From Bugula neritina (Eukaryota; Animalia; Bryozoa), in assembly GCA_964035545.1 (NCBI GenBank), contig CAXIUT010000183.1:806001-870000 (forward strand): 64,000 nucleotides of DNA, read 5' to 3'. The translations under genes and the position numbers were made by a program. Shown here piece after piece: positions 1-43,400 of the stretch. The number at the start of each line of letters is the position of its first letter. Position 1 is the first letter of the stretch. The notes under the pieces are model-generated. The model was not told where the DNA came from. It ran no database searches and saw only the letters and a program-made list of their open reading frames with translations.

Positions 1-140
1 TACTGCAACATACCGAAATATATGGTAAACTAATGAAATATACTGTAACACATTGAAAAATACCGCAACATACTGAAATATACTGCGACACATTGCAATA
101 TACTGTAACATATTGAAATATGCTGTAGCACACTGAAATA

Positions 141-1130
141 CACTGCAACATCCTACAACATACTGAAATACACTGTAACATATTGAAATACACTGCAAGA
201 AATTGAAATAGACTGCAACATAACAAAATATATGGTAAACTACTGAAATAGACTTTAACACATTGAAAAATACTGCAACATACAGAAATATACTGTAACA
301 CACTGAAATATACTGCAACATACTGAAATACACTGTAACATTCTGAAAAATACTGCAACATACTGAAATACACTGCTACATACTGAAATACACTGCAACA
401 TACTGCAAAATACTGCAACATACTGAAATACACTGTAACATATTGAAGTACACTGCAACACATTGAAATATACTGCAACATACCAAAATATATGGTAAAC
501 AACTGAAATATACTTCAACACATTGAAAAATACTGCAACATACTGAAATATACTGCGACACTTTGCAATATACTGTAACATACCGAAATATGCTCTAGCA
601 CACTGAAATACACTGCAACTCACTGAAATATACTGCAACATCCTACAACATACTGAAATACACTGTAACATATTGAAATACACTGCAAGAAATTGAAATA
701 GACTGCAACATAACAAAATATATGGTAAACTACTGAAATAGACTTTAACACATTGAAAAATACTGCAACATACAGAAATATACTGTAACACACTGAAATA
801 TACTGCAACATACTGAAATACACTGTAACATTCTGAAAAATACTGCAACATACTGAAATACACTGCTACATACTGAAATATACTGCAACATACTGCAAAA
901 TACTGCAACATACTGAAATACACTGTAACATATTGAAGTACACTGCAACACATTGAAATATACTGCAACATACCAAAATATATGGTAAACAACTGAAATA
1001 TACTTCAACACATTGAAAAATACTGCAACATACTGAAATATACTGCGACACTTTGCAATATACTGTAACATACCGAAATATGCTCTAGCACACTGAAATA
1101 CACTGCAACTCACTGAAATATACTGCAACA
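141..1130. repeat. 490-bp tandem duplication
   Basis: ORF pairs 255/745 and 376/866; marker cactgcaagaaattgaaatagac at 191 and 681. Confidence 0.9.
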
Positions 1131-1390
1131 TACTGAAATACACTGTGACATCCTGAAATATACTGCAAAATTCTGAAATACACTGCTACATACTGAAATA
1201 TACTGCAACATACTGCAACATACTGAAATACACTGCAACATACTACAACATACTGAAATACGCTGCAACACATTGAAATATACTGCAACATACCTAAATA
1301 TACGGTAATATACCGAAATATACTGTAACACATTGAAAAATACTGCAACATACTGAAATATATTTTAACACATTGAAAAATACTGCAACA

Positions 1391-2010
1391 TACTGAAATA
1401 TACTGTAACACACTGAAGTACACTGCAACTGACTGAAATATACTGCAATATACAGAAATACACTGCAACATCCTACAAAATGCTGAAATACACTGTAACA
1501 TATTGAAATACACTGCAACACATTGAAACATACTGCAACATACCGAAATATATAGTAAACTACTGAAATAAACTGTAACACATTGAAAAATACTGCAACA
1601 TACTGAAATATACTGCAACATACCTAAATATACGGTAATATACTGAAATATACTATAACACACCGAAATATACTGCAACATACTGAAATACACTGTAACA
1701 TACTGAAATATACTGTAACACACTGAAGTACACTGCAACTGACTGAAATATACTGCAATATACAGAAATACACTGCAACATCCTACAAAATGCTGAAATA
1801 CACTGTAACATATTGAAATACACTGCAACACATTGAAACATACTGCAACATACCGAAATATATAGTAAACTACTGAAATAAACTGTAACACATTGAAAAA
1901 TACTGCAACATACTGAAATATACTGCAACATACCTAAATATACGGTAATATACTGAAATATACTATAACACACCGAAATATACTGCAACATACTGAAATA
2001 CACTGTAACA
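1391..2010. repeat. 310-bp tandem duplication inside the HOR
   Basis: Marker cactgaagtacactgcaactgactg at 1411 and 1721; repeated in the HOR copies at ~6.0, ~10.7 and ~49.2 kb. Confidence 0.9.
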
Positions 2011-5000
2011 TACTGAAATATACTGCAACATACTTAAACACACTGCTACATACTGCAACATACTGCAACATACTGCAACATACTGAAATACACTGTAACA
2101 TACTGAAATAAACTGCAACATACTACAACATATTGAAATACACTGCAACACATTGAAATATACTGCTACATACCTAAATATACGGTAATATACTGAAATA
2201 TACTGTAACACATTGAAAAAACTGCAACATACTGAAATACACTGCAACGCACTGAAATACACCGCAAAATGCTACAACATGCTGAAATACACTGTAACAT
2301 ATTGAAATCCACTGCAACACATTGAAATATACTGCAACATACCGAAATATATGGTAAACTAATGAAATATACTGTAACACATTGAAAAATACCGCAACAT
2401 ACTGAAATACACTGCAACACATTGAAATATACTGCTACATACCTAAATATACGGTAATATACTGAAATATACTGTAACGCATTGCAAAATACTGCAACAT
2501 ACTGAAATACACTGCGACACACTGAAATACGCTGCAAAATACTACAACATACTGAAATAAACTGTAACATATTGAAATACACTGCAATACATTGAAAAAT
2601 AATGCAATATACTGAAATATACTGTAACACACTGAAATATACTGCAACATACTGAAATACACTGTAACATACTGAAATATACTGCAACGTACTGAAATAC
2701 ACTGCTACATACTGAAATATACTGTAACATACTGCAACATACTGAAATACACTGTAACATACTGAGATACACTGCCGCATACTGCAACATATTGAACTAC
2801 ACTGCAACACATTGAAATATATTGCAACTTATCGAATATATGGAAAACTACTGAAATATACTGTAACGCATTGAAAGAGACTGCAACATACTGAAATATA
2901 TTGCGACACATTGCAATATACTGTAATATACTGAAAAATGCTGTAGCACACTGAAGTACACCGCAACATCCTACAACATACTAAAATACACTGTAACATT
3001 TCGAAATACACTGCAACACATTGAATTATACTGCAACATAACGAAATATATGGTAAACTACTGAAATATATTTTAACAAATTGAAAAATAGTGCAACATA
3101 CTGAAATATACTGTAACACACTGAAGTATACTGCAACATACTGAAATACACTGTAACATACTGAAATATACTGCAACATACTAAAATACACTGCTACATA
3201 CTGAAATATACTGCAACGTACTGCAACATACTGCAACATACTGAAATACACTGTAACATACTGAATTACACTGCAACATACTACCACATATTGAAATACA
3301 CTGCAACACATTGAAATGTACTACAACATACCGAAATATATGGTAAACTACTAAAATATACTGTAACAGATTGAAAAATACTGCAACATACTGAAATATA
3401 CTGCGACACCTAGCAATATACTGTAACATACTGAAATATGCTCTAGCACACTGAAATACAATGCAACTTACTGAAATATACTGCAACATGCTGAAATACA
3501 CTGCAACATCCTACAATATGCTGAAATACACAGTAACATATTGAAATACACTGCAACACTTTGAAATATACTGCAACATACCGAAATATATGGTAAACTA
3601 CTGCAACATACTACAACATACTGAAATACACTGCAACACATAGAAATATACTGCGACATACCTAGATATACGGTAATATACTGAAATATACTGTAACACA
3701 TTGAAAAATACCGCAACATACTGAAATATACTGCGACACATTGCAATATACTGTAACATATTGAAATATGCTGTAGCACACTGAAATACACTGCAACATC
3801 CTACAACATACTGAAATACACTGTAACATATTGAAATACACTGCAAGAAATTGAAATAGACTGCAACATAACAAAATATATGGTAAACTACTGAAATAGA
3901 CTTTAACACATTGAAAAATACTGCAACATACATAAATATACTGTAACACACTGAAATATACTGCAACATACTGAAATACACTGTAACATTCTGAAATATA
4001 CTGCAACATACTGAAATACACTGCTACATACTGAAATATACTGCAACATACTGCAAAATACTGCAACATACTGAAATACACTGTAACATATTGAAGTACA
4101 CTGCAACACATTGAAATATACTGCAACATACCAAAATATATGGTAAACAACTGAAATATACTTTAACACATTGAAAAATACTGCAACATACTGAAATATA
4201 CTGCGACACTTTGCAATATACTGTAACATACCGAAATATGCTCTAGCACACTGAAATACACTGCAACTCACTGAAATATACTGCAACATACTGAAATACA
4301 CTGTGACATCCTGAAATATACTGCAACATTCTGAAATACACTGCTACATACTGAAATATACTGCAACATACTGCAACATACTGAAATACACTGCAACATA
4401 CTACAACATACTGAAATACGCTGCAACACATTGAAATATACTGCAACATACCTAAATATACGGTAATATACTGAAATATACTGTAACGCATTGCAAAATA
4501 CTGCAACATACTGAAATACACTGCGACACACTGAAATACGCTGCAAAATACTACAACATACTGAAATAAACTGTTATATATTGAAATACACTGCAATACA
4601 TTGAAAAATAATGCAATATACTGAAATATACTGTAACACACTGAAATATACTGCAACATACTGAAATACACTGTAACATACTGAAATATACTGCAACGTA
4701 CTGAAATACACTGCTACATACTGAAATATACTGTAGCATACTGCAACATACTGAAATACACTGTAACATACTGAGATACACTGCCGCATACTGCAACATA
4801 TTGAAATACACTGCAACACATTGAAATATACAGCAACATAACAAAATATATGGTAAACTACTGAAATAGACTTTAACACATTGAAAAATACTGCAACATA
4901 CTGTAATATACTGTAACACACTGAAGTATACTGCAACATACTGAAATACACTGTAACATACTGAAATATACTGCAACATACTGAAATACACTGCTACATA

Positions 5001-8000
5001 CTGAAATATACTGCAACGTACTGCAACATACTCCAACATACTGAAATACACTGTAACATACTGAAATTCACTGCAACATACTACCACATATTGAAATACA
5101 CTGCAACACATTGAAATGTACTTCAACATACCGAAATATAAGGTAAACTACTAAAATATGCTGTAACATATTGAAAAATACTGCAACATACTGAAATATA
5201 CTGCGACACCTAGCAATATACTGTAACATACTGAAATATGCTCTAGCACACTGAAATACAATGCAACTTACTGAATAATACTGCAACATACTGAAATACA
5301 CTGCAACATCCTACAATATGCTGAAATACACTGTAACATATTGAAAGACACTGCAACACTTTGAAATATACTGCAACATACCGAAATATATGGTAAACTA
5401 CTGCAACATACTACAACATATTGAAATACACTGCAACACATTGAAGTATACTGCAACATACCTAAATATACGGTAATATACTGAAATATACTGTAACACA
5501 CTGAAATATACTGCAACATACTGAAATACACTGTAACATACTGAAATATACTGCAACATACTGAAATACACTGCTACATACTGAAATATACTGCAACATA
5601 CTGCAATACACTGTAACATACTGAAATACACTGCAACATACTACAACATATTGAAACACACTGCAACACATTGGAATACACTGCAACTTACCGAATATAT
5701 GGTAAACTACTGAAATATACTGTAACGCATTGAAAAATACTGCAACATACTGAAATATATTGCGACACATTGCAATATACTGTAACATACTGAAAAATGC
5801 TGTAGCACACTGAAATATACTGCAATTCACTGAAATATACTGCAACATACTGAAATACACCGCAACATCCTACAACACACTGAAATACTTTGTAACATAT
5901 TGAAATACACTGCAACACATTGAAATATACTGCAACATAACGAAATATATGGTAAACTACTGAAATATATTTTAACACATTGAAAAATACTGCAACATAC
6001 TGAAATATATTTTAACACATTGAAAAATACTGCAACATACTGAAATATACTGTAACACACTGAAGTACACTGCAACTGACTGAAATATACTGCAATATAC
6101 AGAAATACACTGCAACATCCTACAAAATGCTGAAATACACTGTAACATATTGAAATACACTGCAACACATTGAAACATACTGCAACATACCGAAATATAT
6201 AGTAAACTACTGAAATAAACTGTAACACATTGAAAAATACTGCAACATACTGAAATATACTGCAACATACCTAAATATACGGTAATATACTGAAATATAC
6301 TATAACACACCGAAATATACTGCAACATACTGAAATACACTGTAACATACTGAAATATACTGTAACACACTGAAGTACACTGCAACTGACTGAAATATAC
6401 TGCAATATACAGAAATACACTGCAACATCCTACAAAATGCTGAAATACACTGTAACATATTGAAATACACTGCAACACATTGAAACATACTGCAACATAC
6501 CGAAATATATAGTAAACTACTGAAATAAACTGTAACACATTGAAAAATACTGCAACATACTGAAATATACTGCAACATACCTAAATATACGGTAATATAC
6601 TGAAATATACTATAACACACCGAAATATACTGCAACATACTGAAATACACTGTAACATACTGAAATATACTGCAACATACTTAAACACACTGCTACATAC
6701 TGCAACATACTGCAACATACTGCAACATACTGAAATACACTGTAACATACTGAAATAAACTGCAACATACTACAACATATTGAAATACACTGCAACACAT
6801 TGAAATATACTGCTACATACCTAAATATACGGTAATATACTGAAATATACTGTAACACATTGAAAAAACTGCAACATACTGAAATACACTGCAACGCACT
6901 GAAATACACCGCAAAATGCTACAACATGCTGAAATACACTGTAACATATTGAAATCCACTGCAACACATTGAAATATACTGCAACATACCGAAATATATG
7001 GTAAACTAATGAAATATACTGTAACACATTGAAAAATACCGCAACATACTGAAATACACTGCAACACATTGAAATATACTGCTACATACCTAAATATACG
7101 GTAATATACTGAAATATACTGTAACGCATTGCAAAATACTGCAACATACTGAAATACACTGCGACACACTGAAATACGCTGCAAAATACTACAACATACT
7201 GAAATAAACTGTAACATATTGATATACACTGCAATACATTGAAAAATAATGCAATATACTGAAATATACTGTAACACACTGAAATATACTGCAACATACT
7301 GAAATACACTGTAACATACTGAAATATACTGCAACGTACTGAAATACACTGCTACATACTGAAATATACTGTAACATACTGCAACATACTGAAATACACT
7401 GTAACATACTGAGATACACTGCCGCATACTGCAACATATTGAACTACACTGCAACACATTGAAATATATTGCAACTTATCGAATATATGGAAAACTACTG
7501 AAATATACTGTAACGCATTGAAAGAGACTGCAACATACTGAAATATATTGCGACACATTGCAATATACTGTAATATACTGAAAAATGCTGTAGCACACTG
7601 AAGTACACCGCAACATCCTACAACATACTAAAATACACTGTAACATTTCGAAATACACTGCAACACATTGAATTATACTGCAACATAACGAAATATATGG
7701 TAAACTACTGAAATATATTTTAACAAATTGAAAAATAGTGCAACATACTGAAATATACTGTAACACACTGAAGTATACTGCAACATACTGAAATACACTG
7801 TAACATACTGAAATATACTGCAACATACTAAAATACACTGCTACATACTGAAATATACTGCAACGTACTGCAACATACTGCAACATACTGAAATACACTG
7901 TAACATACTGAATTACACTGCAACATACTACCACATATTGAAATACACTGCAACACATTGAAATGTACTACAACATACCGAAATATATGGTAAACTACTA

Positions 8001-11000
8001 AAATATACTGTAACAGATTGAAAAATACTGCAACATACTGAAATATACTGCGACACCTAGCAATATACTGTAACATACTGAAATATGCTCTAGCACACTG
8101 AAATACAATGCAACTTACTGAAATATACTGCAACATGCTGAAATACACTGCAACATCCTACAATATGCTGAAATACACAGTAACATATTGAAATACACTG
8201 CAACACTTTGAAATATACTGCAACATACCGAAATATATGGTAAACTACTGCAACATACTACAACATACTGAAATACACTGCAACACATAGAAATATACTG
8301 CGACATACCTAGATATACGGTAATATACTGAAATATACTGTAACACATTGAAAAATACCGCAACATACTGAAATATACTGCGACACATTGCAATATACTG
8401 TAACATATTGAAATATGCTGTAGCACACTGAAATACACTGCAACATCCTACAACATACTGAAATACACTGTAACATATTGAAATACACTGCAAGAAATTG
8501 AAATAGACTGCAACATAACAAAATATATGGTAAACTACTGAAATAGACTTTAACACATTGAAAAATACTGCAACATACATAAATATACTGTAACACACTG
8601 AAATATACTGCAACATACTGAAATACACTGTAACATTCTGAAATATACTGCAACATACTGAAATACACTGCTACATACTGAAATATACTGCAACATACTG
8701 CAAAATACTGCAACATACTGAAATACACTGTAACATATTGAAGTACACTGCAACACATTGAAATATACTGCAACATACCAAAATATATGGTAAACAACTG
8801 AAATATACTTTAACACATTGAAAAATACTGCAACATACTGAAATATACTGCGACACTTTGCAATATACTGTAACATACCGAAATATGCTCTAGCACACTG
8901 AAATACACTGCAACTCACTGAAATATACTGCAACATACTGAAATACACTGTGACATCCTGAAATATACTGCAACATTCTGAAATACACTGCTACATACTG
9001 AAATATACTGCAACATACTGCAACATACTGAAATACACTGCAACATACTACAACATACTGAAATACGCTGCAACACATTGAAATATACTGCAACATACCT
9101 AAATATACGGTAATATACTGAAATATACTGTAACGCATTGCAAAATACTGCAACATACTGAAATACACTGCGACACACTGAAATACGCTGCAAAATACTA
9201 CAACATACTGAAATAAACTGTTATATATTGAAATACACTGCAATACATTGAAAAATAATGCAATATACTGAAATATACTGTAACACACTGAAATATACTG
9301 CAACATACTGAAATACACTGTAACATACTGAAATATACTGCAACGTACTGAAATACACTGCTACATACTGAAATATACTGTAGCATACTGCAACATACTG
9401 AAATACACTGTAACATACTGAGATACACTGCCGCATACTGCAACATATTGAAATACACTGCAACACATTGAAATATACTGCAACATAACAAAATATATGG
9501 TAAACTACTGAAATAGACTTTAACACATTGAAAAATACTGCAACATACTGTAATATACTGTAACACACTGAAGTATACTGCAACATACTGAAATACACTG
9601 TAACATACTGAAATATACTGCAACATACTGAAATACACTGCTACATACTGAAATATACTGCAACGTACTGCAACATACTCCAACATACTGAAATACACTG
9701 TAACATACTGAAATTCACTGCAACATACTACCACATATTGAAATACACTGCAACACATTGAAATGTACTTCAACATACCGAAATATAAGGTAAACTACTA
9801 AAATATGCTGTAACATATTGAAAAATACTGCAACATACTGAAATATACTGCGACACCTAGCAATATACTGTAACATACTGAAATATGCTCTAGCACACTG
9901 AAATACAATGCAACTTACTGAATAATACTGCAACATACTGAAATACACTGCAACATCCTACAATATGCTGAAATACACTGTAACATATTGAAAGACACTG
10001 CAACACTTTGAAATATACTGCAACATACCGAAATATATGGTAAACTACTGCAACATACTACAACATATTGAAATACACTGCAACACATTGAAGTATACTG
10101 CAACATACCTAAATATACGGTAATATACTGAAATATACTGTAACACACTGAAATATACTGCAACATACTGAAATACACTGTAACATACTGAAATATACTG
10201 CAACATACTGAAATACACTGCTACATACTGAAATATACTGCAACATACTGCAATACACTGTAACATACTGAAATACACTGCAACATACTACAACATATTG
10301 AAACACACTGCAACACATTGGAATACACTGCAACTTACCGAATATATGGTAAACTACTGAAATATACTGTAACGCATTGAAAAATACTGCAACATACTGA
10401 AATATATTGCGACACATTGCAATATACTGTAACATACTGAAAAATGCTGTAGCACACTGAAATATACTGCAATTCACTGAAATATACTGCAACATACTGA
10501 AATACACCGCAACATCCTACAACACACTGAAATACTTTGTAACATATTGAAATACACTGCAACACATTGAAATATACTGCAACATAACGAAATATATGGT
10601 AAACTACTGAAATATATTTTAACACATTGAAAAATACTGCAACATACTGAAATATATTTTAACACATTGAAAAATACTGCAACATACTGAAATATACTGT
10701 AACACACTGAAGTACACTGCAACTGACTGAAATATACTGCAATATACAGAAATACACTGCAACATCCTACAAAATGCTGAAATACACTGTAACATATTGA
10801 AATACACTGCAACACATTGAAACATACTGCAACATACCGAAATATATAGTAAACTACTGAAATAAACTGTAACACATTGAAAAATACTGCAACATACTGA
10901 AATATACTGCAACATACCTAAATATACGGTAATATACTGAAATATACTATAACACACCGAAATATACTGCAACATACTGAAATACACTGTAACATACTGA

Positions 11001-12560
11001 AATATACTGTAACACACTGAAGTACACTGCAACTGACTGAAATATACTGCAATATACAGAAATACACTGCAACATCCTACAAAATGCTGAAATACACTGT
11101 AACATATTGAAATACACTGCAACACATTGAAACATACTGCAACATACCGAAATATATAGTAAACTACTGAAATAAACTGTAACACATTGAAAAATACTGC
11201 AACATACTGAAATATACTGCAACATACCTAAATATACGGTAATATACTGAAATATACTATAACACACCGAAATATACTGCAACATACTGAAATACACTGT
11301 AACATACTGAAATATACTGCAACATACTTAAACACACTGCTACATACTGCAACATACTGCAACATACTGCAACATACTGAAATACACTGTAACATACTGA
11401 AATAAACTGCAACATACTACAACATATTGAAATACACTGCAACACATTGAAATATACTGCTACATACCTAAATATACGGTAATATACTGAAATATACTGT
11501 AACACATTGAAAAAACTGCAACATACTGAAATACACTGCAACGCACTGAAATACACCGCAAAATGCTACAACATGCTGAAATACACTGTAACATATTGAA
11601 ATCCACTGCAACACATTGAAATATACTGCAACATACCGAAATATATGGTAAACTAATGAAATATACTGTAACACATTGAAAAATACCGCAACATACTGAA
11701 ATACACTGCAACACATTGAAATATACTGCTACATACCTAAATATACGGTAATATACTGAAATATACTGCAACGCATTGCAAAATACTGCAACATACTGAA
11801 ATACACTGCGACACACTGAAATACGCTGCAAAATACTACAACATACTGAAATAAACTGTAACATATTGAAATACACTGCAATACATTGAAAAATAATGCA
11901 ATATACTGAAATATACTGTAACACACTGAAATATACTGCAACATACTGAAATACACTGTAACATACTGAAATATACTGCAACGTACTGAAATACACTGCT
12001 ACATACTGAAATATACTGTAACATACTGCAACATACTGAAATACACTGTAACATACTGAGATACACTCCCGCATACTGCAACATATTGAACTACACTGCA
12101 ACACATTGAAATATATTGCAACTTATCGAATATATGGAAAACTACTGAAATATACTGTAACGCATTGAAAGAGACTGCAACATACTGAAATATATTGCGA
12201 CACATTGCAATATACTGTAATATACTGAAAAATGCTGTAGCACACTGAAGTACACCGCAACATCCTACAACATACTAAAATACACTGTAACATTTCGAAA
12301 TACACTGCAACACATTGAATTATACTGCAACATAACGAAATATATGGTAAACTACTGAAATATATTTTAACAAATTGAAAAATAGTGCAACATACTGAAA
12401 TATACTGTAACACACTGAAGTATACTGCAACATACTGAAATACACTGTAACATACTGAAATATACTGCAACATACTAAAATACACTGCTACATACTGAAA
12501 TATACTGCAACGTACTGCAACATACTGCAACATACTGAAATACACTGTAACATACTGAAT

Positions 12561-12562
12561 TA
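12561..12562. other. Target-site duplication TA (left copy)
   Basis: A single TA in the empty site at 51067-51068; two copies flank the element. Confidence 0.85.
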
Positions 12563-12584
12563 CACAGCTTGATTAAGGTCACCC
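12563..12584 (+). repeat. Left terminal inverted repeat
   Basis: CACAGCTTGATTAAGGTCACCC; 19/22 identical to the reverse complement of the right end (CACAGCATAATTAAGGTCATCC). Confidence 0.93.
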
Positions 12585-12632
12585 TTCTACTGAATCAGTA
12601 ATTTCATTGCTCCATTATAATTATATATGAAA

Positions 12633-12905
12633 CAGTGCCCCACTCATAACTCAACTAATTTTGAGGCTAGAATCAAAATTCAAAAACCATCTTGTAAATA
12701 TTTTGCTGCTCTATTAGAGGCTTTTTTAAAATCTTTACCTACCCAACTCGTTGCATTTTTATGCTTCAAAAACAGTCAAAAATTGCCCATTTTCGCATAA
12801 AAAAACATGGTCTCAGTGCCCCACGAATTATTCAATTCCTAAGCAACAGATCTCTCCAAAAATTGAAACAGAGAGTTATAAGATATTTGTCTATTAGAGG
12901 CTTTT
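12633..12905 (+). repeat. Diverged ~180-bp subterminal direct repeat with two conserved boxes
   Basis: CAGTGCCCCAC at 12633 and 12814 (181 apart); TCTATTAGAGGCTTTT at 12710 and 12890 (180 apart); the sequence between the boxes is poorly conserved. Confidence 0.8.
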
Positions 12906-12979
12906 CAAAGTTTTCAGATAACCTCAATAGAATTGGTGTAAACGTGTAATTTATACACTGATTTTATTAAAAATTTTAC

Positions 12980-13090
12980 TTCTCGCTTAGTCTGCACGCT
13001 TGGCTGAACGCCGTAGAGCTGCGCTGTTATACTAGCCATCACTGATTGCAGGGAGCTCGCGCGACCTAAGATTCATGTTTTGCGCGCTAA
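12980..13090. promoter_or_regulatory. CpG/GC-enriched patch, possible internal promoter of the element
   Basis: Cluster of CG dinucleotides (gaacgccgt, gctgcgct, gctcgcgcgac, tgcgcgct) in an otherwise AT-rich, CpG-poor element, upstream of the candidate exons. Confidence 0.3.
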
Positions 13091-13629
13091 ACCAAAGGGT
13101 TAAAGTTCATCTCTGCACTAAACTAATTACATGGTATAGACTGGTTATTAGATAGTAGCTTAGTAATTGTAATCCGGCTGTTGCAATATTGCTGTACTGC
13201 CTATGGACGCGAGGCTGTACAATGTGCAATCTACTCTGAATCTAGATTTCAGTCGTATATTTATATAAAGCAGTTTCTGAAGCCTGCATACATTTCCTGC
13301 TTCGACTTGTTTCTTTCTAGTGCAAAGCAGTTTAGTAATACAGCCTGCATGATAACCCAGACATCTTAGGATGCTAGTGAAAGTTAAAGCCACTAAATTT
13401 TATACCTTTTGTGTGTGATTTCAAAGCAAATTTATTGTTCTGTAGAGTAATCTAAATTATTCTAATAATACATTTGTAACCAAATTATTTTAAAACATTA
13501 AATTTTTTTTCCGGAGTCTACAAAATTGTTGGAGGGAATTCTTAGTCAATTGAATAGTAATTGCATAATTTTCTGTAAACAATAGTAGTAAAGTCTTATC
13601 AGCTAAGTATAAGTATGTGGTGTGTGCAG

Positions 13630-14416
13630 TGATGAGGGTATTGAGAAATTAAACCCTGCATTTCGTATTATTGGGCCTATTATAGGCAGTGAGATGCAGC
13701 TTAAGAAGTTTAGAGAGAATTCCGACAGGTTACCAAATTAGAATTTCTTGAAAAATTTAAGAACTTATAGGCTGTTTAAGCTTTTCTGCTATTGCACCTA
13801 CCAGGCAACTTTTTTTTATAATAAAGTATTAAAATTCTGGTAGCTTACAATTAAATAAGTAGTTTCTGATTGATAAATAGTGCTTGCACGTAAGAGGCTT
13901 GTATGTAGCAGGCTTGCAATAGCAGTAAGCCATTTTGCTAATGGCTCTGGCAGTGACCAGCCCTTCATACCCAGTGACAAGGTGCTGCTATTTTTAGCTG
14001 AAATGAGCTCACGCGAATTTGAACTTAAATGCCCAACTAGACTACTTGTCAATAATGAGCAACTTAGGCAGGTTATTTTATATTGCAATATGGTTTTAAT
14101 TACAATTAGCTTTAAATAGTCAATTATGTGACCAGATTCAGCATGATGTAAAATAAATGGGTATTTAATTTCACGATTTCTTTTGGACCTGACTGAATCT
14201 CAAATAACCATAACTATGGGGTTCTAGCATTTGAGTACAAGTTTCTGTACACATATATACTACTCATTTCCTTTACTGCTTACACCAATTCATTACATTG
14301 GTAGATAACTATAGGTAGTGCACTTTCAGTCTACTAGCTCAGTAAGAGCTTCACTGCAGTTTCAAGCTAATGCCAGCAGCAGACATCGGAATAGCTTGTT
14401 TGTATTGAAGATGTGA
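13630..14416 (+). CDS. Putative spliced cargo gene fragment of unknown function (exons 13630-13728, 13909-14071, 14315-14416; 5' end unresolved)
   Basis: Three AG/GT-bounded segments join in phase (2-2, 2-0, 0-stop) to give DEGIEKLNPAFRIIGPIIGSEMQLKKFRENSDSRLAIAVSHFANGSGSDQPFIPSDKVLLFLAEMSSREFELKCPTRLLVNNEQLRQVVHFQSTSSVRASLQFQANASSRHRNSLFVLKM*. The donors (AG|GTTA) and polypyrimidine tracts are weak and I recognise no domain. Confidence 0.3.
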
Positions 14417-17400
14417 CTTCTAATCTAATTAGGTTATAACTAAAGGAGTGGAGTGTGGTTGTGGTATTATGAGGGGGTGTTCAAAGTTTTATCAATTTTT
14501 TAAAACAATAGTAAAATAGATAAATAAGTAAATTATAATTTATAAAACAATAAGTTTTATTTTATATATAAATGACTAAAGCGCATGCTATCATAATGCT
14601 TTCAAAAAAGCACATAGAACGTTTATAATTCATATTCACCCCTCCCAAAACCTACCCTAGTCATTCCGCTGCTGCAGTGCACTGTCCTCAAACTAACTGC
14701 TCTGCATAATATCATACGTAGCTGTAAGCGTTACTTATCTTGCCCGATTGGATATGTTACTAGTAAAAGCTAGCTTCGTAAATAAAAACTTCGATGTTAA
14801 AACGCAATCTGTGAAGTGAACTTGCCAACTGGCGGTGGGATTATCATTTTAAAATGGAGTGAAAAACGTCTTTTACCTCTCAAACCTACGATGAAAGAGT
14901 GTACTTTGATTAACTTTAAAAGTTTAACTTCAAGGGTAAGTGAATATCACTGCTTCCTTCAGCAAATTCGCATATTTCATATTGCTTTCAAGCAATAATA
15001 TAGTTATTTTTGATAATTTTATAGAATTTGTATAGTTGTACTATTAGTATTACAGTAGACCTATACTGTGTACTATAACTATTACTATATTCATATTACT
15101 ATTATTATTATAGCATTGCACAGTATAACTAAACTTCAAAATTGAGTTTTATATTCATAAAAAAGGCATAGTATAATAGGAATGCATTGATGGTAGAACT
15201 ATTACTAAGACTGTAAGACTAGATCAAAATTGTCAGAGTTCATTTCATCATTATGTAATTAACTCTAAGAAAAATGGCCAAATTTATTATTGACTATCAC
15301 TTTTTTCTCCAATTATTTAGAGTACTGTAGTTGAGTAGGCACATAGAAAATATAGTTTTGCACTAAAAATCTTTTGTTTAGTAACTCTAATTGTACTACT
15401 ACTTGCATACCTAACTACATTTACTGTGAGTGACCAACTTAAAATACATTATAAGCATATGTTTCAAAAGAATTGGAGTCATCATGGCCATCATATCTAC
15501 TAAGAAATTATTTGAAAAATACAATTTCAAGGGAGCATCCAACCTAATAGTAATTGTAATTATGAGCTGTGTTTTTTAAAAAGTCACCAGCAGGCAGCTT
15601 TGATCTGCATGATTACAGTATAGGTAGATTTTACAGAATATATAAGATTACTATAGTACTAACTGCATGTGGTGTATGAACATGTTAATTCAAATTCAAA
15701 ATGTTGCAAATTACTTTTCAATGTATTGAGAAAACTGCTATTTATATTTTTAGATTGAGTTCCAAAAACAAGTGGGCTACTAGATGATTAGGTTTTGTCA
15801 AAGAAATGCTATAGCATGTGTACTCAGGACATCCTTTCTATGTCAGCATCAGCTTTTAGGATCTTTAGATTCTCTATACTCTTGCAAGACGATATATTTT
15901 TATGTTTAAAAAGCATAATACTCTACAACTGACACCTATATATCAAGACTCTACCTGCAAAAATAGGACTTTTATTACCAGATGTAAAAACTAAAATTAT
16001 TAATAATTGACAGGACTAATCACCCCAGCAATGTGCCTTTTGGTTAGGCTTTTGCAGCTTGAATTTTTATAGATTCTGCTTTTTTACAAAATCAGTTTTG
16101 ACATTCAATATTGTAATGTATGTTCAAGAAAAGTAATTAGGGAACTAACCTATTATTTCTCCCATGTTTGTAATATACTTATAGGATGTATTGCTATGAC
16201 AAGTCCTGACTTATTCCTTCACAATAGTATACAGCTGTTACACCTTCTGCATGTTTACATTATTCATTGAACTTGCTACTTCTATGCCTGATCATACGTG
16301 TATATATATTATACTATGTTTGAAAATCCACACTGATTTTCGTTTTGATCTTTAGCAATGGCTATCTGGTGTTAACTTGAATAAAACTGGTTGATTTGTT
16401 GCATATGCCTAAATTATTGAGTCAATTCTTGTTATGGAATATTATAACTGCAGCATCAGAATAATAGAAAATGCATTGCTAGTTATATCTGAGCTGATTA
16501 ACTGACACCTATCAGGCCGGAAACAAAACTGAATTCACTGGACATCTTCTTTTATCTTAAGGAAATTTTCTTTTCAAATTCTCAATACTTGTCTAGCTAA
16601 GATTAAAACTTTTCATCTTGAATGTTTCACTCAGGCAAGCATAGTGTCGGTCAGTCAGTCTAACTAGACACAGCTTTTTCTATTAGATGCTAAATTTAGA
16701 AACATAAATTAGTTGATAATCTTGGCTCCGAGTTTGTATACAAGCCGATGATATCATGCTTCAGTGAACACTGCGCAGCTATGATAACCAACTATTGATA
16801 GCTGCCAGGAGTACAAAGGAGCCCAGTTGTTTGCTGGCCTCAAATTTATTTCTCAGTGCAAGGCAACAAGATACAGCTCATAGCCAGTTTTTGGACATTT
16901 AGATAGAAGCCATTTAGGCTTGATTGGACCTTTTAAAGTTTAGACTGTATAAAACAGAGAGCAAATAGAATATATTTAAAGCACAGGCTCACGGTCTAAC
17001 ATTTTATATAGTTCAAAGTTCCAACTCACTTCAATAAGTGTTGATTACTGCTTATACTAATGTACAATGAGACCACAAAAGTACCTACTAGCTATATTAG
17101 AAACTTGCAGCGATCAAATCCTTTACCCAAACCATCTAAACTCAAAGTGGCCACACAAAATTCTGCATATCTGATCATTACAGCTACCAACAAAATCTCA
17201 CACATGACTATCTGATCTATATGCAAGTCTCTTTACTATTCTAAGCTATTGTGCAGAGTCCTTAACTGATTGTAATAGTTTAGCACTGAGAAGTGTTTTT
17301 GCAACTAAAAGAGGATTTTAATGATGAAGGTAATTTTGGCTTTAGGTTAGTCAATGGTAGTGAACAGATAGATTATTAGTCTAGCCTAAAAACATTATGC

Positions 17401-17903
17401 TTTGAGAGAAGAGCATCTCTAAATTATTTGTTACGGCTGCCTTTTCACGTTATTTAAATAATATGTGCATTGAAAGTTCAAAAGTTGTAGTCAAGCCTGT
17501 AATTATTAACAACTTTATTAGACTAGGCAAATGGATAAATATTGAGTTAGCTTTAGCATTTAGCTTGCTTTCAGAATCTGAAATAGTTTTACATGGTTTG
17601 TTGAAAAAGAAGTTACGAAAATTATCTTCCTTTGTACATCAAGTACATTGCACATGAAAAGAGCCACTAGTCTCTTGTAATAATAATAATGAGGTGATGC
17701 TGAGGCTTGCCATGACCACATACTTGCTCAATAGAATGTAGCCATGGTTGTAATATAAACAGGTGCAGCCCTAGCTAGTTTGATGGTCTGTTGGCAATTG
17801 TTCAACCTCATGCTAAATTATGACAAGTAGGCAATACGCATGCCGCCCACAGAGCAATAGCAACTAGGAACTGAGACTAGATTATGAGCCGATATTTTAC
17901 TGG

Positions 17904-17925
17904 GGATGACCTTAATTATGCTGTG
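17904..17925 (-). repeat. Right terminal inverted repeat
   Basis: GGATGACCTTAATTATGCTGTG, reverse complement CACAGCATAATTAAGGTCATCC. Confidence 0.93.
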
Positions 17926-17927
17926 TA
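17926..17927. other. Target-site duplication TA (right copy)
   Basis: Immediately follows GCTGTG; the satellite continues cactgcaacatactaccac as in the empty site. Confidence 0.85.
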
Positions 17928-18359
17928 CACTGCAACATACTACCACATATTGAAATACACTGCAACACATTGAAATGTACTGCAACATACCGAAATATAT
18001 GGTAAACTACTAAAATATACTGTAACAGATTGAAAAATACTGCAACATACTGAAATATACTGCGACACCTAGCAATATACTGTAACATACTGAAATATGC
18101 TCTAGCACACTGAAATACAATGCAACTTACTGAAATATACTGCAACATGCTGAAATACACTGCAACATCCTACAATATGCTGAAATACACAGTAACATAT
18201 TGAAATACACTGCAACACTTTGAAATATACTGCAACATACCGAAATATATGGTAAACTACTGCAACATACTACAACATACTGAAATACACTGCAACACAT
18301 AGAAATATACTGCGACATACCTAGATATACGGTAATATACTGAAATATACTGTAACACA

Positions 18360-34749: not shown

Positions 34750-37700
34750 CATATTGAAATACACTGCAACACATTGAAATGTACTTCAACATACCGAAAT
34801 ATAAGGTAAACTACTAAAATATGCTGTAACATATAGAAAAATACTGCAACATACTGAAATATACTGCGACACCTAGCAATATACTGTAACATACTGAAAT
34901 ATGCTCTAGCACACTGAAATACAATGCAACTTACTGAAATATACTGCAACATACTGAAGTACACTGCAACATCCTACAATATGCTGAAATACACTGTAAC
35001 ATATTGAATTACACTGCAACACTTTGAAATATACTGCAACATACCGAAATATATGGTAAACTACTGCAACATACTACAACATATTGAAATACACTGCAAC
35101 ACATTGAAGTATACTGCAACATACCTAAATATACGGTAATATACTGAAATATACTGTAACACATTGAAAAATCCTGCAACATACTGAAATATACTGTAAC
35201 ACACCGAAATATACTGCAACATACTGAAATACACTGTAACATACTGAAATATACTGCAACATACTGAAATACACTGCTACATACTGAAATATGCTGCAAC
35301 ATACTGCAACATACTGAAATACACTGTAACATACTGAAATAAACTGCAACATACTACAACATATTGAAATACACTGCAACACATTGAAATATACTGCAAC
35401 ATACCTAAATATACGGTAATATACTGAAATTCACTGTAACGCATTGCAAAATACTGCAACATACTGAAATTCACTGCGACACACTGAAATACGCTGCAAA
35501 ATACTACAACATACTGAAATAAACTGTAACATATTGAAATACACTGCAACAGATTGAAAAATACTGCAACATACTGAAATATGCTGCAACATACTGCAAC
35601 ATACTGAAATACACTGTAACATACTGAAATAAACTGCAACATACTACAACATATTGAAATACACTGCAACACATTGAAATATACTGCAACATAACGAAAT
35701 ATATGGTAAACTACTGAAATATATTTTAACACATTGAAAAATACTGCAACATACTGAAATATATTTTAACACATTGAAAAATACTGCAACATACTGAAAT
35801 ATACTGTAACACACTGAAGTATACTGCAACATACTGAAATACACTGTAACATACTGAAATATACTGCAACATACAGAAATACACTGCTACATACTGAAAT
35901 ATACTGCAACGTACTGCAACATACTCCAACATACTGAAATACACTGTACCATACTGAAATACACTGCAACATACTACCACATATTGAAATACACTGCAAC
36001 ACATTGAAATACACTGCAACTTACCGAATATATGGTAAACTACTGAAATATCCTGTAACGCATTGAAAAATACTGCAACATACTGAAATATATTGCGACA
36101 CATTGCAATATACTGTAACATACTGAAAAATGCTGTAGCACACTGAAATATACTGCAATTCACTGAAATATACTGCAACATACTGAAATACACCGCAACA
36201 TCCTACAACATACTGAAATACTTTGTAACATATTGAAATCACTGCAACACGTTGAAATATACTGCAACATAACGAAATATATGGTAAACTACTGAAATAT
36301 ATTTTAACACATCGAAAAATACTGCAACATACTGAAATATATTTTAACACATTGAAAAATACTGCAACATACTGAAATATACTGTAACACACTGAAGTAC
36401 ACTGCAACTCACTGAAATATACTGCAATATACAGAAATACACTGCAACATCCTACAAAATGCTGAAATACACTGTACCATATTGAAATACACTGCAACAT
36501 ACTACCACATATTGAAATACACTGCAACACATTGAAATGTACTTCAACATACCGAAATATAAGGTAAACTACTAAAATATGCTGTAACATATTGAAAAAT
36601 ACTGCAACATACTCAAATATACTGCGACACCTAGCAATATACTGTAACATACTGAAATATGCTCTAGCACACTGAAATACAATGCAACTTACTGAAATAT
36701 ACTGCAACATACTGAAGTACACTGCAACATCCTACAATATGCTGAAATACACTGTAACATATTGAATTACACTGCAACACTTTGAAATATACTGCAACAT
36801 ACCGAAATATATGGTAAACTACTGCAACATACTACAACATATTGAAATACACTGCAACACATTGAAGTATACTGCAACATACCTAAATATACGGTAATAT
36901 ACTGAAATATACTGTAACACATTGAAAAATCCTGCAACATACTGAAATATACTGTAACACACCGAAATATACTGCAACATACTGAAATACACTGTAACAT
37001 ACTGAAATATACTGCAACATACTGAAATACACTGCTACATACTGAAATATGCTGCAACATACTGCAACATACTGAAATACACTGTAACATACTGAAATAA
37101 ACTGCAACATACTACAACATATTGAAATACACTACAACACATTGAAATATACTGCAACATACCTAAATATACGGTAATATACTGAAATTCACTGTAACGC
37201 ATTGCAAAATACTGCAACATACTGAAGTTCACTGCGACACACTGAAATACGCTGCAAAATACTACAACATACTGAAATAAACTGTAACATATTGAAATAC
37301 ACTGCAACAGATTGAAAAATATTGCAACATACTGAAATATACTGTAACACACTGAAATATACTGCAACATACTGAAATACACTGTAACATACTGAAATAT
37401 ACTGCAACATACTGAAATACACTGCTACATACTGAAATATACTGCAACATACTGCAACATACTGCAATACACTGTAACATACTGAAATACACTGCAACAT
37501 ACTACAAAATATTGAAATACACTGCAACACATTGAAATACACTGCAACACATTGAAATATACTGCAACATAACGAAATATATGGTAAACTACTGAAATAT
37601 ATTTTAACACATTGAAAAATACTGCAACATACTGAAATATATTTTAACACATTGAAAAATACTGCAACATACTGAAATATACTGTAACACACTGAAGTAT

Positions 37701-40450
37701 ACTGCAACATACTGAAATACACTGTAACATACTGAAATATACTGCAACATACTGAAATACACTGCTACATACTGAAATATACTGCAACGTACTGCAACAT
37801 ACTCCAACATACTGAAATACACTGTACCATACTGAAATACACTGCAACATACTACCACATATTGAAATACACTGCAACACATTGAAATACACTGCAACTT
37901 ACCGAATATATGGTAAACTACTGAAATATACTGTAACGCATTGAAAAATACTGCAACATACTGAAATATATTGCGACACATTGCAATATACTGTAACATA
38001 CTGAAAAATGCTGTAGCACACTGAAATATACTGCAATTCACTGAAATATACTGCAACATACTGAAATACACCGCAACATCCTACAACATACTGAAATACT
38101 TTGTAACATATTGAAATACACTGCAACACGTTGAAATATACTGCAACATAACGAAATATATGGTAAACTACTGAAATATATTTTAACACATCGAAAAATA
38201 CTGCAACATACTGAAATATACTGTAACACACTGAAGTACACTGCAACTCACTGAAATATACTGCAATATACAGAAATACACTGCAACATCCTACAAAATG
38301 CTGAAATACACTGTACCATATTGAAATACACTGCAACATACTACCACATATTGAAATACACTGCAACACATTGAAATGTACTTCAACATACCGAAATATA
38401 AGGTAAACTACTAAAATATGCTGTAACATATTGAAAAATACTGCAACATACTGAAATATACTGCGACACCTAGCAATATACTGTAACATACTGAAATATG
38501 CTCTAGCACACTGAAATACAATGCAACTTACTGAAATATACTGCAACATACTGCAACATACTGAAATACACTGCAACATACTACAACATACTGAAATACG
38601 CTGCAACACATTGAAATATACTGCAACATACCTAAATATACGGTAATATACTGAAATTCACTGTAACGCATTGCAAAATACTGCAACATACTGAAATTCA
38701 CTGCGACACACTGAAATACGCTGCAAAATACTACAACATACTGAAATAAACTGTAACATATTGAAATACACTGCAACACATTGAAAAATACTGCAACATA
38801 CTGAAATATACTGTAACACACTGAAATATACTGCAACATACTGAAATACACTGTAACATACTGAAATATACTGCAACATACTGAAATACACTGCTACATA
38901 CTGAAATATACTGCAACATACTGCAACATACTGCAATACACTGTAACATACTGAAATACACTGCAACATACTACAACATATTGAAACACACTGCAACACA
39001 TTGAAATACACTGCAACTTACCGAATATATGGTAAACTACTGAAATATACTGTAACGCATTGAAAAATAGTGCAACATACTGAAATATATCGCGACACAT
39101 TGCAATATACTGTAACATACTGAAAAATGCTGTAGCACACTGAAATATACTGCAATTCACTGAAATATACTGCAACATACTGAAATACACCGCAACATCC
39201 TACAACATACTGAAATACTTTGTAACATATTGAAATACACTGCAACACATTGAAATATACTGCAACATAACGAAATATATGGTAAACTACTGAAATATAT
39301 TTTAACACACTGAAAAATACTGCAACATACTGAAATATATTTTAACACATTGAAAAATACTGCAACATACTGAAATATACTGTAACACACTGAAGTACAC
39401 TGCAACTCACTGAAATATACTGCAATATACAGAAATACACTGCAACATCCTACAAAATGCTGAAATACACTGTAACATATTGAAATACACTGCAACACAT
39501 TGAAATATACTGCAACATACCGAAATATATAGTAAACTACTGAAATATACTGTAACACATTGAAAAATACTGCAACATACTGAAATATACTGCAACATAC
39601 CTAAATATACGGTAATATACTGAAATATACTGTAACACACCGAAATATACTGCAACATACTGAAATACACTGTAACATACTGAAATACACTGCTACATAC
39701 TGCAACATACTGCAACATACTGCAACATACTGAAATACACTGTAACATACTGAAATACACTGCAACATACTACAAAATATTGAAATACACTGCAACACAT
39801 TGAAATACACTGCAACACATTGAAATATACTGCAACATAACGAAATATATGGTAAACTACTGAAATATATTTTAACACATTGAAAAATACTGCAACATAC
39901 TGAAATATATTTTAACACATTGAAAAATACTGCAACATACTGAAATATACTGTAACACACTGAAGTATACTGCAACATACTGAAATACACTGTAACATAC
40001 TGAAATATACTGCAACATACTCAAATACACTGCTACATACTGAAATATACTGCAACGTACTGCAACATACTCCAACATACTGAAATACACTGTACCATAC
40101 TGAAATACACTGCAACATACTACCACATATTGAAATACACTGCAACACATTGAAATACACTGCAACTTACCGAATATATGGTAAACTACTGAAATATACT
40201 GTAACGCATTGAAAAATACTGCAACATACTGAAATATATTGCGACACATTGCAATATACTGTAACATACTGAAAAATGCTGTAGCACACTGAAATATACT
40301 GCAATTCACTGAAATATACTGCAACATACTGAAATACACCGCAACATCCTACAACATACTGAAATACTTTGTAACATATTGAAATACACTGCAACACATT
40401 GAAATATACTGCAACATAACGAAATATATGGTAAACTACTGAAATATATT
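34750..40450. repeat. Variable-length local HOR cluster (offsets 1758, 1878 and 2268 bp)
   Basis: ORF matches 35009/36767, 35277/37035, 35726/37604/39872, 35766/37644/39912; private marker actgtaccata. Boundaries are approximate. Confidence 0.75.
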
Positions 40451-40456
40451 TTAACA

Positions 40457-43400
40457 CATTGAAAAATACTGCAACATACTGAAATATATTTTAACACATT
40501 GAAAAATACTGCAACATACTGAAATATACTGTAACACACTGAAGTACACTGCAACTGACTGAAATATACTGCAATATACAGAAATACACTGCAACATCCT
40601 ACAAAATGCTGAAATACACTGTAACATATTGAAATACACTGCAACACATTGAAACATACTGCAACATACCGAAATATATAGTAAACTACTGAAATAAACT
40701 GTAACACATTGAAAAATACTGCAACATACTGAAATATACTGCAACATACCTAAATATACGGTAATATACTGAAATATACTATAACACACCGAAATATACT
40801 GCAACATACTGAAATACACTGTAACATACTGAAATATACTGCAACATACTTAAACACACTGCTACATACTGCAACATACTGCAACATACTGCAACATACT
40901 GAAATACACTGTAACATACTGAAATAAACTGCAACATACTACAACATATTGAAATACACTGCAACACATTGAAATATACTGCTACATACCTAAATATACG
41001 GTAATATACTGAAATATACTGTAACACATTGAAAAAACTGCAACATACTGAAATACACTGCAACGCACTGAAATACACCGCAAAATGCTACAACATGCTG
41101 AAATACACTGTAACATATTGAAATCCACTGCAACACATTGAAATATACTGCAACATACCGAAATATATGGTAAACTAATGAAATATACTGTAACACATTG
41201 AAAAATACCGCAACATACTGAAATACACTGCAACACATTGAAATATACTGCTACATACCTAAATATACGGTAATATACTGAAATATACTGTAACGCATTG
41301 CAAAATACTGCAACATACTGAAATACACTGCGACACACTGAAATACGCTGCAAAATACTACAACATACTGAAATAAACTGTAACATATTGAAATACACTG
41401 CAATACATTGAAAAATAATGCAATATACTGAAATATACTGTAACACACTGAAATATACTGCAACATACTGAAATACACTGTAACATACTGAAATATACTG
41501 CAACGTACTGAAATACACTGCTACATACTGAAATATACTGTAACATACTGCAACATACTGAAATACACTGTAACATACTGAGATACACTGCCGCATACTG
41601 CAACATATTGAACTACACTGCAACACATTGAAATATATTGCAACTTATCGAATATATGGAAAACTACTGAAATATACTGTAACGCATTGAAAGAGACTGC
41701 AACATACTGAAATATATTGCGACACATTGCAATATACTGTAATATACTGAAAAATGCTGTAGCACACTGAAGTACACCGCAACATCCTACAACATACTAA
41801 AATACACTGTAACATTTCGAAATACACTGCAACACATTGAATTATACTGCAACATAACGAAATATATGGTAAACTACTGAAATATATTTTAACAAATTGA
41901 AAAATAGTGCAACATACTGAAATATACTGTAACACACTGAAGTATACTGCAACATACTGAAATACACTGTAACATACTGAAATATACTGCAACATACTAA
42001 AATACACTGCTACATACTGAAATATACTGCAACGTACTGCAACATACTGCAACATACTGAAATACACTGTAACATACTGAATTACACTGCAACATACTAC
42101 CACATATTGAAATACACTGCAACACATTGAAATGTACTACAACATACCGAAATATATGGTAAACTACTAAAATATACTGTAACAGATTGAAAAATACTGC
42201 AACATACTGAAATATACTGCGACACCTAGCAATATACTGTAACATACTGAAATATGCTCTAGCACACTGAAATACAATGCAACTTACTGAAATATACTGC
42301 AACATGCTGAAATACACTGCAACATCCTACAATATGCTGAAATACACAGTAACATATTGAAATACACTGCAACACTTTGAAATATACTGCAACATACCGA
42401 AATATATGGTAAACTACTGCAACATACTACAACATACTGAAATACACTGCAACACATAGAAATATACTGCGACATACCTAGATATACGGTAATATACTGA
42501 AATATACTGTAACACATTGAAAAATACCGCAACATACTGAAATATACTGCGACACATTGCAATATACTGTAACATATTGAAATATGCTGTAGCACACTGA
42601 AATACACTGCAACATCCTACAACATACTGAAATACACTGTAACATATTGAAATACACTGCAAGAAATTGAAATAGACTGCAACATAACAAAATATATGGT
42701 AAACTACTGAAATAGACTTTAACACATTGAAAAATACTGCAACATACATAAATATACTGTAACACACTGAAATATACTGCAACATACTGAAATACACTGT
42801 AACATTCTGAAATATACTGCAACATACTGAAATACACTGCTACATACTGAAATATACTGCAACATACTGCAAAATACTGCAACATACTGAAATACACTGT
42901 AACATATTGAAGTACACTGCAACACATTGAAATATACTGCAACATACCAAAATATATGGTAAACAACTGAAATATACTTTAACACATTGAAAAATACTGC
43001 AACATACTGAAATATACTGCGACACTTTGCAATATACTGTAACATACCGAAATATGCTCTAGCACACTGAAATACACTGCAACTCACTGAAATATACTGC
43101 AACATACTGAAATACACTGTGACATCCTGAAATATACTGCAACATTCTGAAATACACTGCTACATACTGAAATATACTGCAACATACTGCAACATACTGA
43201 AATACACTGCAACATACTACAACATACTGAAATACGCTGCAACACATTGAAATATACTGCAACATACCTAAATATACGGTAATATACTGAAATATACTGT
43301 AACGCATTGCAAAATACTGCAACATACTGAAATACACTGCGACACACTGAAATACGCTGCAAAATACTACAACATACTGAAATAAACTGTTATATATTGA

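Follow-up and report, generated by a model that had tools for sequence, protein, structure and literature searches.

A stretch of 64,000 nucleotides from the bryozoan Bugula neritina (GenBank assembly GCA_964035545.1, contig CAXIUT010000183.1, positions 806,001 to 870,000; the whole of this stretch is called the window here) consists of satellite DNA that is interrupted once, by 5.36 kb of unrelated DNA. The locus raises the question of what this block is, and of how a piece of DNA with no gene of its own could have come to lie there. The block, which occupies window positions 12563 to 17925, is very probably a recent, non-coding copy of a non-autonomous transposon, for which a RAG1-like transposase is supplied in trans by a related 12.4-kb element that shares its ends.

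A transposon insertion with its empty sites in the same array

The window is filled by a 20-bp satellite (consensus TACTGCAACATACTGAAATA; ∼31% G+C, with a strong strand skew) except for one block. The GC-skew profile of the window lost its skew in this block alone, and a 200-bp autocorrelation scan of the 64 kb confined non-repetitive DNA to ∼12501–18000; both agree with a first-pass annotation of this DNA, which had recorded a single unique block. Within these limits lies an element of 5,363 bp (12563–17925, forward strand), which was assigned from repeat-finder output, genome copies and flanks to subfamily A, and within it to the youngest lineage, of the transposon family described below. 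The 5′ terminal inverted repeat (TIR), CACAGCTTGATTAAGGTCACCC, is located at 12563–12584 on the forward strand, and the 3′ TIR, the reverse complement of which is CACAGCATAATTAAGGTCATCC, is located at 17904–17925 on the reverse strand. A copy of the dinucleotide TA stands on either side (12561–12562 and 17926–17927), such that the left junction reads TA followed by CACAGCTTGATTAAGGTCACCC and the right junction reads GGGATGACCTTAATTATGCTGTG followed by TA. The repeat finder gave arms of 12561–12584 and 17904–17927, with 19 of 22 positions matching when counted from CACAGC. The CACAGC...GCTGTG ends, the 19/22 TIRs and the duplicated TA that had been read initially are therefore correct.

The satellite array to the left of the element holds local duplications of 4,647 bp (identity 0.98–1.0 at a lag of 4647), and the site of insertion was found uninterrupted in two of these units, which serve as paralogous empty sites. 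When 5,365 bp (the element plus one TA) were taken out and 400 bp of each flank were rejoined, the product gave an ungapped 799/800 match to the units at 12562 minus 4647 and at 12562 minus 2 × 4647, where a single TA is present at 7914–7915 and 3267–3268 respectively. Offsetting the right flank by 1 to 4 bp in either direction reduced its match to 128/400 or less. The empty-site match fixes the ends of the element at CACAGC...GCTGTG and the target site duplication (TSD) at 2 bp. A 5-bp duplication, TACAC, and a 3-bp TSD were also considered, and were ruled out by the register of the TIRs and by the empty sites; the five bases beside the two ends are unlike (AATTA and TACAC). The empty sites lie in duplications that are ∼99.9% identical and that must predate the insertion, and positions 12563–17925 represent a real and very young insertion of a cut-and-paste transposon.

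The difficulty of assembling satellite arrays, and the small size and unplaced status of contig C192, would favour an assembly artefact in which unique sequence has been misplaced within the array; a misassembly had also been a concern of the first-pass annotation. However, the junctions are exact to the base, they carry a 2-bp duplication, and the satellite register is restored when the element is removed. Furthermore, over 20 other copies with the same ends are found in different contexts, with different flanks. An artefact is next to inconceivable given these data.

Family copies and the target site duplication

The assembly that was searched comprises 216 Mb in 321 contigs. By pattern searches, the family has at least 38 near-exact 5′ ends in the genome, together with ∼45 3′ ends. 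Its copies number ∼40 and fall into two subfamilies, and the element, which had been described as solitary, is so within the window but not in the genome. The closest copy, on contig C2, differs at 8 of 5,363 positions (99.85% identity) and has a different flank and a different TSD. In pairwise alignments, approximately 10 more full-length copies showed 90–96% identity with the window copy. Subfamily B is of equal length with ∼84% aligned identity to the window copy; numerous fragments and internally deleted copies were also present. All copies that were inspected start with CACAGC and finish with GCTGTG.

Both flanks were read for 24 independent copies and matching 2-bp flanks were found in 22. 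The duplicated dinucleotides were TA, CA, TT and AT (four copies each), AA (three copies), and CC, GT and TC (one copy each). Of the two exceptions, one was an old copy with ∼90% identity to the window copy by alignment, and the other was a 13-kb pair of ends, which perhaps do not belong to a single element. The first-pass annotation had asked for such a table, in order to separate a TSD that is always TA from one of any 2 bp. As eight different dinucleotides are duplicated, the TSD of the family is 2 bp of any sequence, TA is not the target of the family and its presence in the window is incidental.

The same tally bears on whether this could be a Tc1/mariner-type element, with a TA duplication arising from obligatory integration at TA. 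Such an element would account for the TA flanks of the window copy and of three others, but 18 other copies duplicated CA, TT, AT, AA, CC, GT or TC, and the enzyme family of the 12.4-kb relative is predicted to be RAG1-like in fold, with none of its 43 profiled members matching the Tc1/mariner families of Pfam. The varied dinucleotides exclude a Tc1/mariner origin for practical purposes.

Some individual loci with family ends deserve mention. A 13.3-kb pair of ends at C8:798496–811757 is flanked by GC and AA, with one flank in satellite, and may represent two elements or a rearrangement. Two copies on C106 (127122–132497 and 177173–182548; loci L010 and L009) are 100% identical, including their flanks, and are spaced by exactly 50,051 bp; identity that continues through the flanks indicates a segmental duplication of satellite and transposon together rather than two transpositions. 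A third 5′ end with the TIR variant of the young lineage, GGTCACCC, was located at C7:11111850–11111871 with no matching 3′ end found nearby, and may stem from a copy of the window lineage that has been truncated or interrupted.

Coding content of the element

In the element, open reading frames (ORFs) from start to stop reach at most 90 aa and stop-free pieces at most 127 aa. Thirty-six stop-free pieces have a length of 40 aa or more, and none of them generated a meaningful Pfam match (best E 0.0032, at the level of chance and to no transposase family). None of the nine longest frames was kept open in other copies, in which frameshifts were common. Four full-length homologues of the transposase described below gave no tblastn match at E ≤ 0.01 against copies of subfamily A or B, and a hidden Markov model (HMM) of the transposase family yielded only non-significant matches on the wrong strand of the element copies (best E 0.026, 8.7 bits). 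The element is therefore without a gene or a remnant of a transposase, and the ORF, Pfam, tblastn and HMM results uphold the original description of DNA with no ORF over 90 aa and no transposase. When the element was compared with Rfam, a single match was obtained, to a long non-coding RNA; it was dismissed because its 22 bits fell short of the gathering score of 45.

The first-pass annotation had also raised the possibility of cargo. Subfamilies A and B are ∼16% apart and yet both retain the full ∼5.3-kb length, and the 2.5-kb interior (14071–16553), which is unique to the non-autonomous family, is unrelated to the autonomous element; both observations would fit a functional cargo under selection, whether spliced gene, non-coding RNA or regulatory module. 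However, this interior is without a match to a Pfam or Rfam family and without an ORF that stays open among copies. Whether copies or subfamilies are compared, identity hardly varies over the full length, with divergence and indels spread uniformly and no conserved block or island beyond the tips. There is no sign of cargo in these data, and we consider its presence very unlikely.

A 12.4-kb element with the same ends

Long elements were sought by pairing 5′ and 3′ family ends by position. A 12,442 bp element located at C6:7085149–7097590 (loci L023 and L024) carries the exact TIRs of the family. Over the terminal 100 bp, as read from an alignment with subfamilies A and B, it shows near-identity at the 5′ end, while roughly 90% or more of positions agree at the 3′ end. 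The 5′ region held in common extends over element positions 1–1508 (window 12563–14070, forward strand; 70–81% identity, with the first 100 bp almost identical) and the 3′ region over element positions 3992–5363 (window 16554–17925, forward strand; 73–83% identity). Between these regions ∼9.3 kb with a multi-exon gene replaces the 2.5-kb interior, and the gene lies on the strand opposite to the 5′-to-3′ orientation of the element. Eight colinear exon matches to the profile of the enzyme family were obtained, with E values from 1e-41 to 0.014. A second copy of this partner, at C4:15502832–15518728, is 98% identical over the gene; the TSDs are TT/TT on C6 and CA/CA on C4. More diverged relatives of the partner are present on C3, C2 and C1.

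The ends of the window element thus match those of an element that encodes a transposase, and the exons were found only in the 12.4-kb element, the pattern of a non-autonomous derivative. A search for a transposase-encoding element with the same TIRs had been among the checks suggested by the first-pass annotation, and the copies on C6 and C4 are that element; together with the gene-less copies they support its proposal of a large non-autonomous TIR element mobilized in trans.

Two other long elements, of 9.4 kb on C5 and 9.97 kb at C6:4110444, were examined as autonomous candidates and rejected, as both are copies of subfamily B with nested insertions. In the C6:4110444 copy the insertion is a ∼4.5-kb long terminal repeat retrotransposon (L022:2211–6707) with an open Gag-Pol frame of 1,316 aa, in which protease, reverse transcriptase, RNase H and integrase motifs are visible. 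The insertion in the C5 copy (L021:4281–8404) is 4.1 kb in length, lies at element position ∼1288 and has no ORF that reaches 100 aa.

The enzyme family of the partner

The exons of the partner were searched singly, and none of them matched Pfam or the sequences of the PDB. A 144-aa exon piece (L023:6275–6706) identified 426 homologues in a library of 1.84 billion proteins, which included full-length proteins (900–1,270 aa) colinear with the partner exons. One homologue, from the scallop Argopecten irradians, bears the name 'uncharacterized protein', and another, from the amphioxus Branchiostoma lanceolatum, the name Hypp2835; homologues occur in amphioxus and in cnidarians. When the full-length homologues and a 43-member profile were compared with Pfam and with PDB sequences, only a SAP domain was matched, and none of the 43 members matched a Pfam transposase family, including DUF1258, Transposase_21 and Tc1/mariner. 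The SAP match was present in 10 of the 43 and falls between the putative second catalytic D and the E (L023:5477–5626; residues 650–678 of homologue P0143). A genome search with the Pfam RAG1 model (PF12940) was uninformative, as a control search was likewise blank.

The fold was assessed on a database homologue. An AlphaFold model of P0141, a homologue of 688 aa, had a mean pLDDT (predicted local distance difference test score) of 92.8, and its best Foldseek matches in the PDB were dozens of RAG1 core chains (E ∼3e-8, probability 1.0), aligned with template modelling (TM) scores of 0.45–0.56 over ∼570 columns. The next matches were the RAG1-like protein of amphioxus (BbRAGL) and then the Transib transposase of Helicoverpa (HzTransib), with TM scores of 0.25–0.44. 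No CACTA, Mirage or Chapaev structure was among the PDB matches listed, and to our knowledge none has been solved to date. With no structure of the CACTA/Mirage/Chapaev (CMC) group among these matches, the match to RAG1 places the enzyme in the wider clade and not in Transib proper. Structural neighbours in the ESM Atlas, which serve as leads only, were clusters with Transposase_21 (CACTA), DUF1258, Plavaka and RAG1 domains. Motifs read by eye in the exons and homologues comprise W-x-D-H-S, GD-x-PA...GG...C-x-C-G, EPLHD, and FH-x4-H with a subsequent E-x-x-E-R. Two of the motifs named for CMC and Transib enzymes (PMC4079192, PMC12730594), LH and H(4)H, are thereby present. From the model, the enzyme family appears to have a RAG1-like fold, with high confidence for the RAG1 core and less for Transib, and it would belong to the CACTA/Mirage/Chapaev/Transib assemblage.

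Proposed mobilization in trans

We propose that the DDE (Asp-Asp-Glu) transposase of the partner would recognize, in trans, the shared TIRs and ∼1.4–1.5 kb of subterminal sequence on each side, and would excise the 5.36-kb element. Integration would then follow through a 2-bp staggered cut at any target sequence, generating a 2-bp duplication, which here would be the TA. The 12.4-kb element, rather than a related family, would be the source of the enzyme, and its gene may currently be functional.

Several observations weigh against this proposal. The fold was tested on homologue P0141 rather than on the spliced protein of the element itself. No link at the level of sequence was found between the transposase and a Pfam transposase family or a PDB chain, so the assignment to a class rests on fold, on motifs and on the features of the ends and TSD. 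With regard to the motifs, LH and H(4)H are present but the cysteine motif is C-x-C and not the C(2)C of the clade. Lastly, a sister family with CACAGGATAGTTAAGGGCATCCT ends (CACAGGA) is more abundant, with ∼250 further ends in the genome (for example C2:18250649–18256130), and its transposase could be the mobilizer in place of the 12.4-kb element on C6 and C4.

Only 3 of 23 positions distinguish the sister end from the 3′ TIR, and short, weak exon homology to the partner gene was found ∼2.8 kb inside several of the sister ends (C3:1149364, C2:25004305 and C1:13966926), which would be consistent with an enzyme from this source. However, the sister ends diverge within the TIR, whereas the 12.4-kb element has the exact TIRs and near-identical terminal 100 bp, as would be expected of a cognate pair. 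Mobilization by the sister transposase is consequently judged unlikely, and supply of the enzyme by the 12.4-kb partner is the explanation that we prefer.

The host satellite

The satellite extends over 1–12560 to the left of the insertion and 17928–64000 to the right, both on the forward strand. The left side was delimited by Tandem Repeats Finder (TRF), by composition and by unit matches, and the right side, which is in register with the left, by TRF, autocorrelation and the rejoined flanks. Large, near-identical local duplications were apparent from position 1 to ∼14000 (element removed) and again around 36000–45000, and a further stretch showed 93% identity at a lag of 1,801 bp. The 20-bp unit, with no more than one mismatch, occurs 706 times in the 58.6 kb of satellite in the window and 99,098 times in the genome; these counts give a satellite of roughly 8 Mb, or ∼4% of the assembly. 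Approximately 10 of the ∼28 family insertion sites for which flanks were read fall in this satellite, which is roughly a ten-fold enrichment. Either an insertion preference or tolerated accumulation in heterochromatin could be responsible.

The element in itself is an ordinary gene-less copy of a transposon, neither a new kind of element nor a misassembly. Its value lies in the window, which provides its own base-exact empty sites and so fixes the boundaries and the 2-bp TSD of the family, and in the matched pair of autonomous and non-autonomous elements of a RAG1-fold transposon that has been active very recently. Such a pair would be useful in the study of RAG1-like enzymes with different target staggers, and the roughly ten-fold enrichment in one satellite is a lead on insertion preference or on tolerated heterochromatic accumulation.

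Comparison with known transposons

Members of the CMC/Transib (CMCT) clade have 5′-CA(C)...(G)TG-3′ termini and a TSD of 2–5 bp (PMC12730594). The family described here has CAC...GTG termini, a 2-bp TSD and, in the model of homologue P0141, a RAG1/Transib-like fold. Ends, TSD and enzyme fold place the element, as a non-autonomous member, in the CACTA/Mirage/Chapaev/Transib assemblage, and the TSD table, the CAC ends and the fold of the enzyme family support the earlier preference for a CMC type over Tc1/mariner. Within the assemblage and outside it, a TSD of any 2 bp departs from the 5 bp of Transib, the 3–4 bp of Chapaev, the TWA of Chapaev3 and the obligatory TA of Tc1/mariner, as only 4 of the 22 TSDs are TA.

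Mirage elements also have a TSD of 2 bp. The likeness to Mirage, which is drawn by description only, extends to the CAC...GTG termini and to a DDE enzyme of the CMC/Transib assemblage; the partner enzyme differs in its inserted SAP domain, in its C-x-C motif and in the lack of a match to DUF1258 or Transposase_21 among the 43 members. Both Mirage and Chapaev are filed under EnSpm by Repbase (PMC4455052). The resemblance to non-autonomous CACTA/EnSpm elements lies in the large size, in the retention of TIRs and long subterminal regions, in the non-coding interior and in mobilization in trans. EnSpm elements have 3-bp TSDs and ends that are typically CACTA or CACTG, in contrast to the 2-bp TSD and CACAG end found here.

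Chapaev elements generate a TSD of 3–4 bp, and Chapaev3 inserts with a TWA duplication between A and T (PMC4079192). The present family shares with these animal CMC transposons the invariant CAC...GTG ends, the LH and H(4)H motifs (PMC4079192) and, for homologues of the partner enzyme, an occurrence in amphioxus and cnidarians. It differs from them in its TSD of any 2 bp, and no Chapa zinc-finger domain was identified in the partner enzyme. In structure the enzyme family is closest to RAG1 and Transib, and the ends start with CACAG, like the heptamer CACAGTG. However, the TSD of Transib is 5 bp (PMC4411706) and not 2 bp, no sequence match to RAG1 or HzTransib was obtained, and the TM scores with HzTransib were low, at 0.25–0.44. 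The potential unclassified family of the first-pass annotation would now concern only the lineage of the CMC/Transib assemblage in which the partner enzyme falls. The combination of a RAG1-like fold, a SAP insert, the C-x-C motif, a TSD of any 2 bp and an occurrence in marine invertebrates (including scallop and amphioxus) tentatively suggests, as a possibility that we favour less than not, that the mobilizing enzyme represents a still unnamed lineage of the CMC/Transib assemblage, the derivatives of which preferentially enter, or persist in, the 20-bp satellite.

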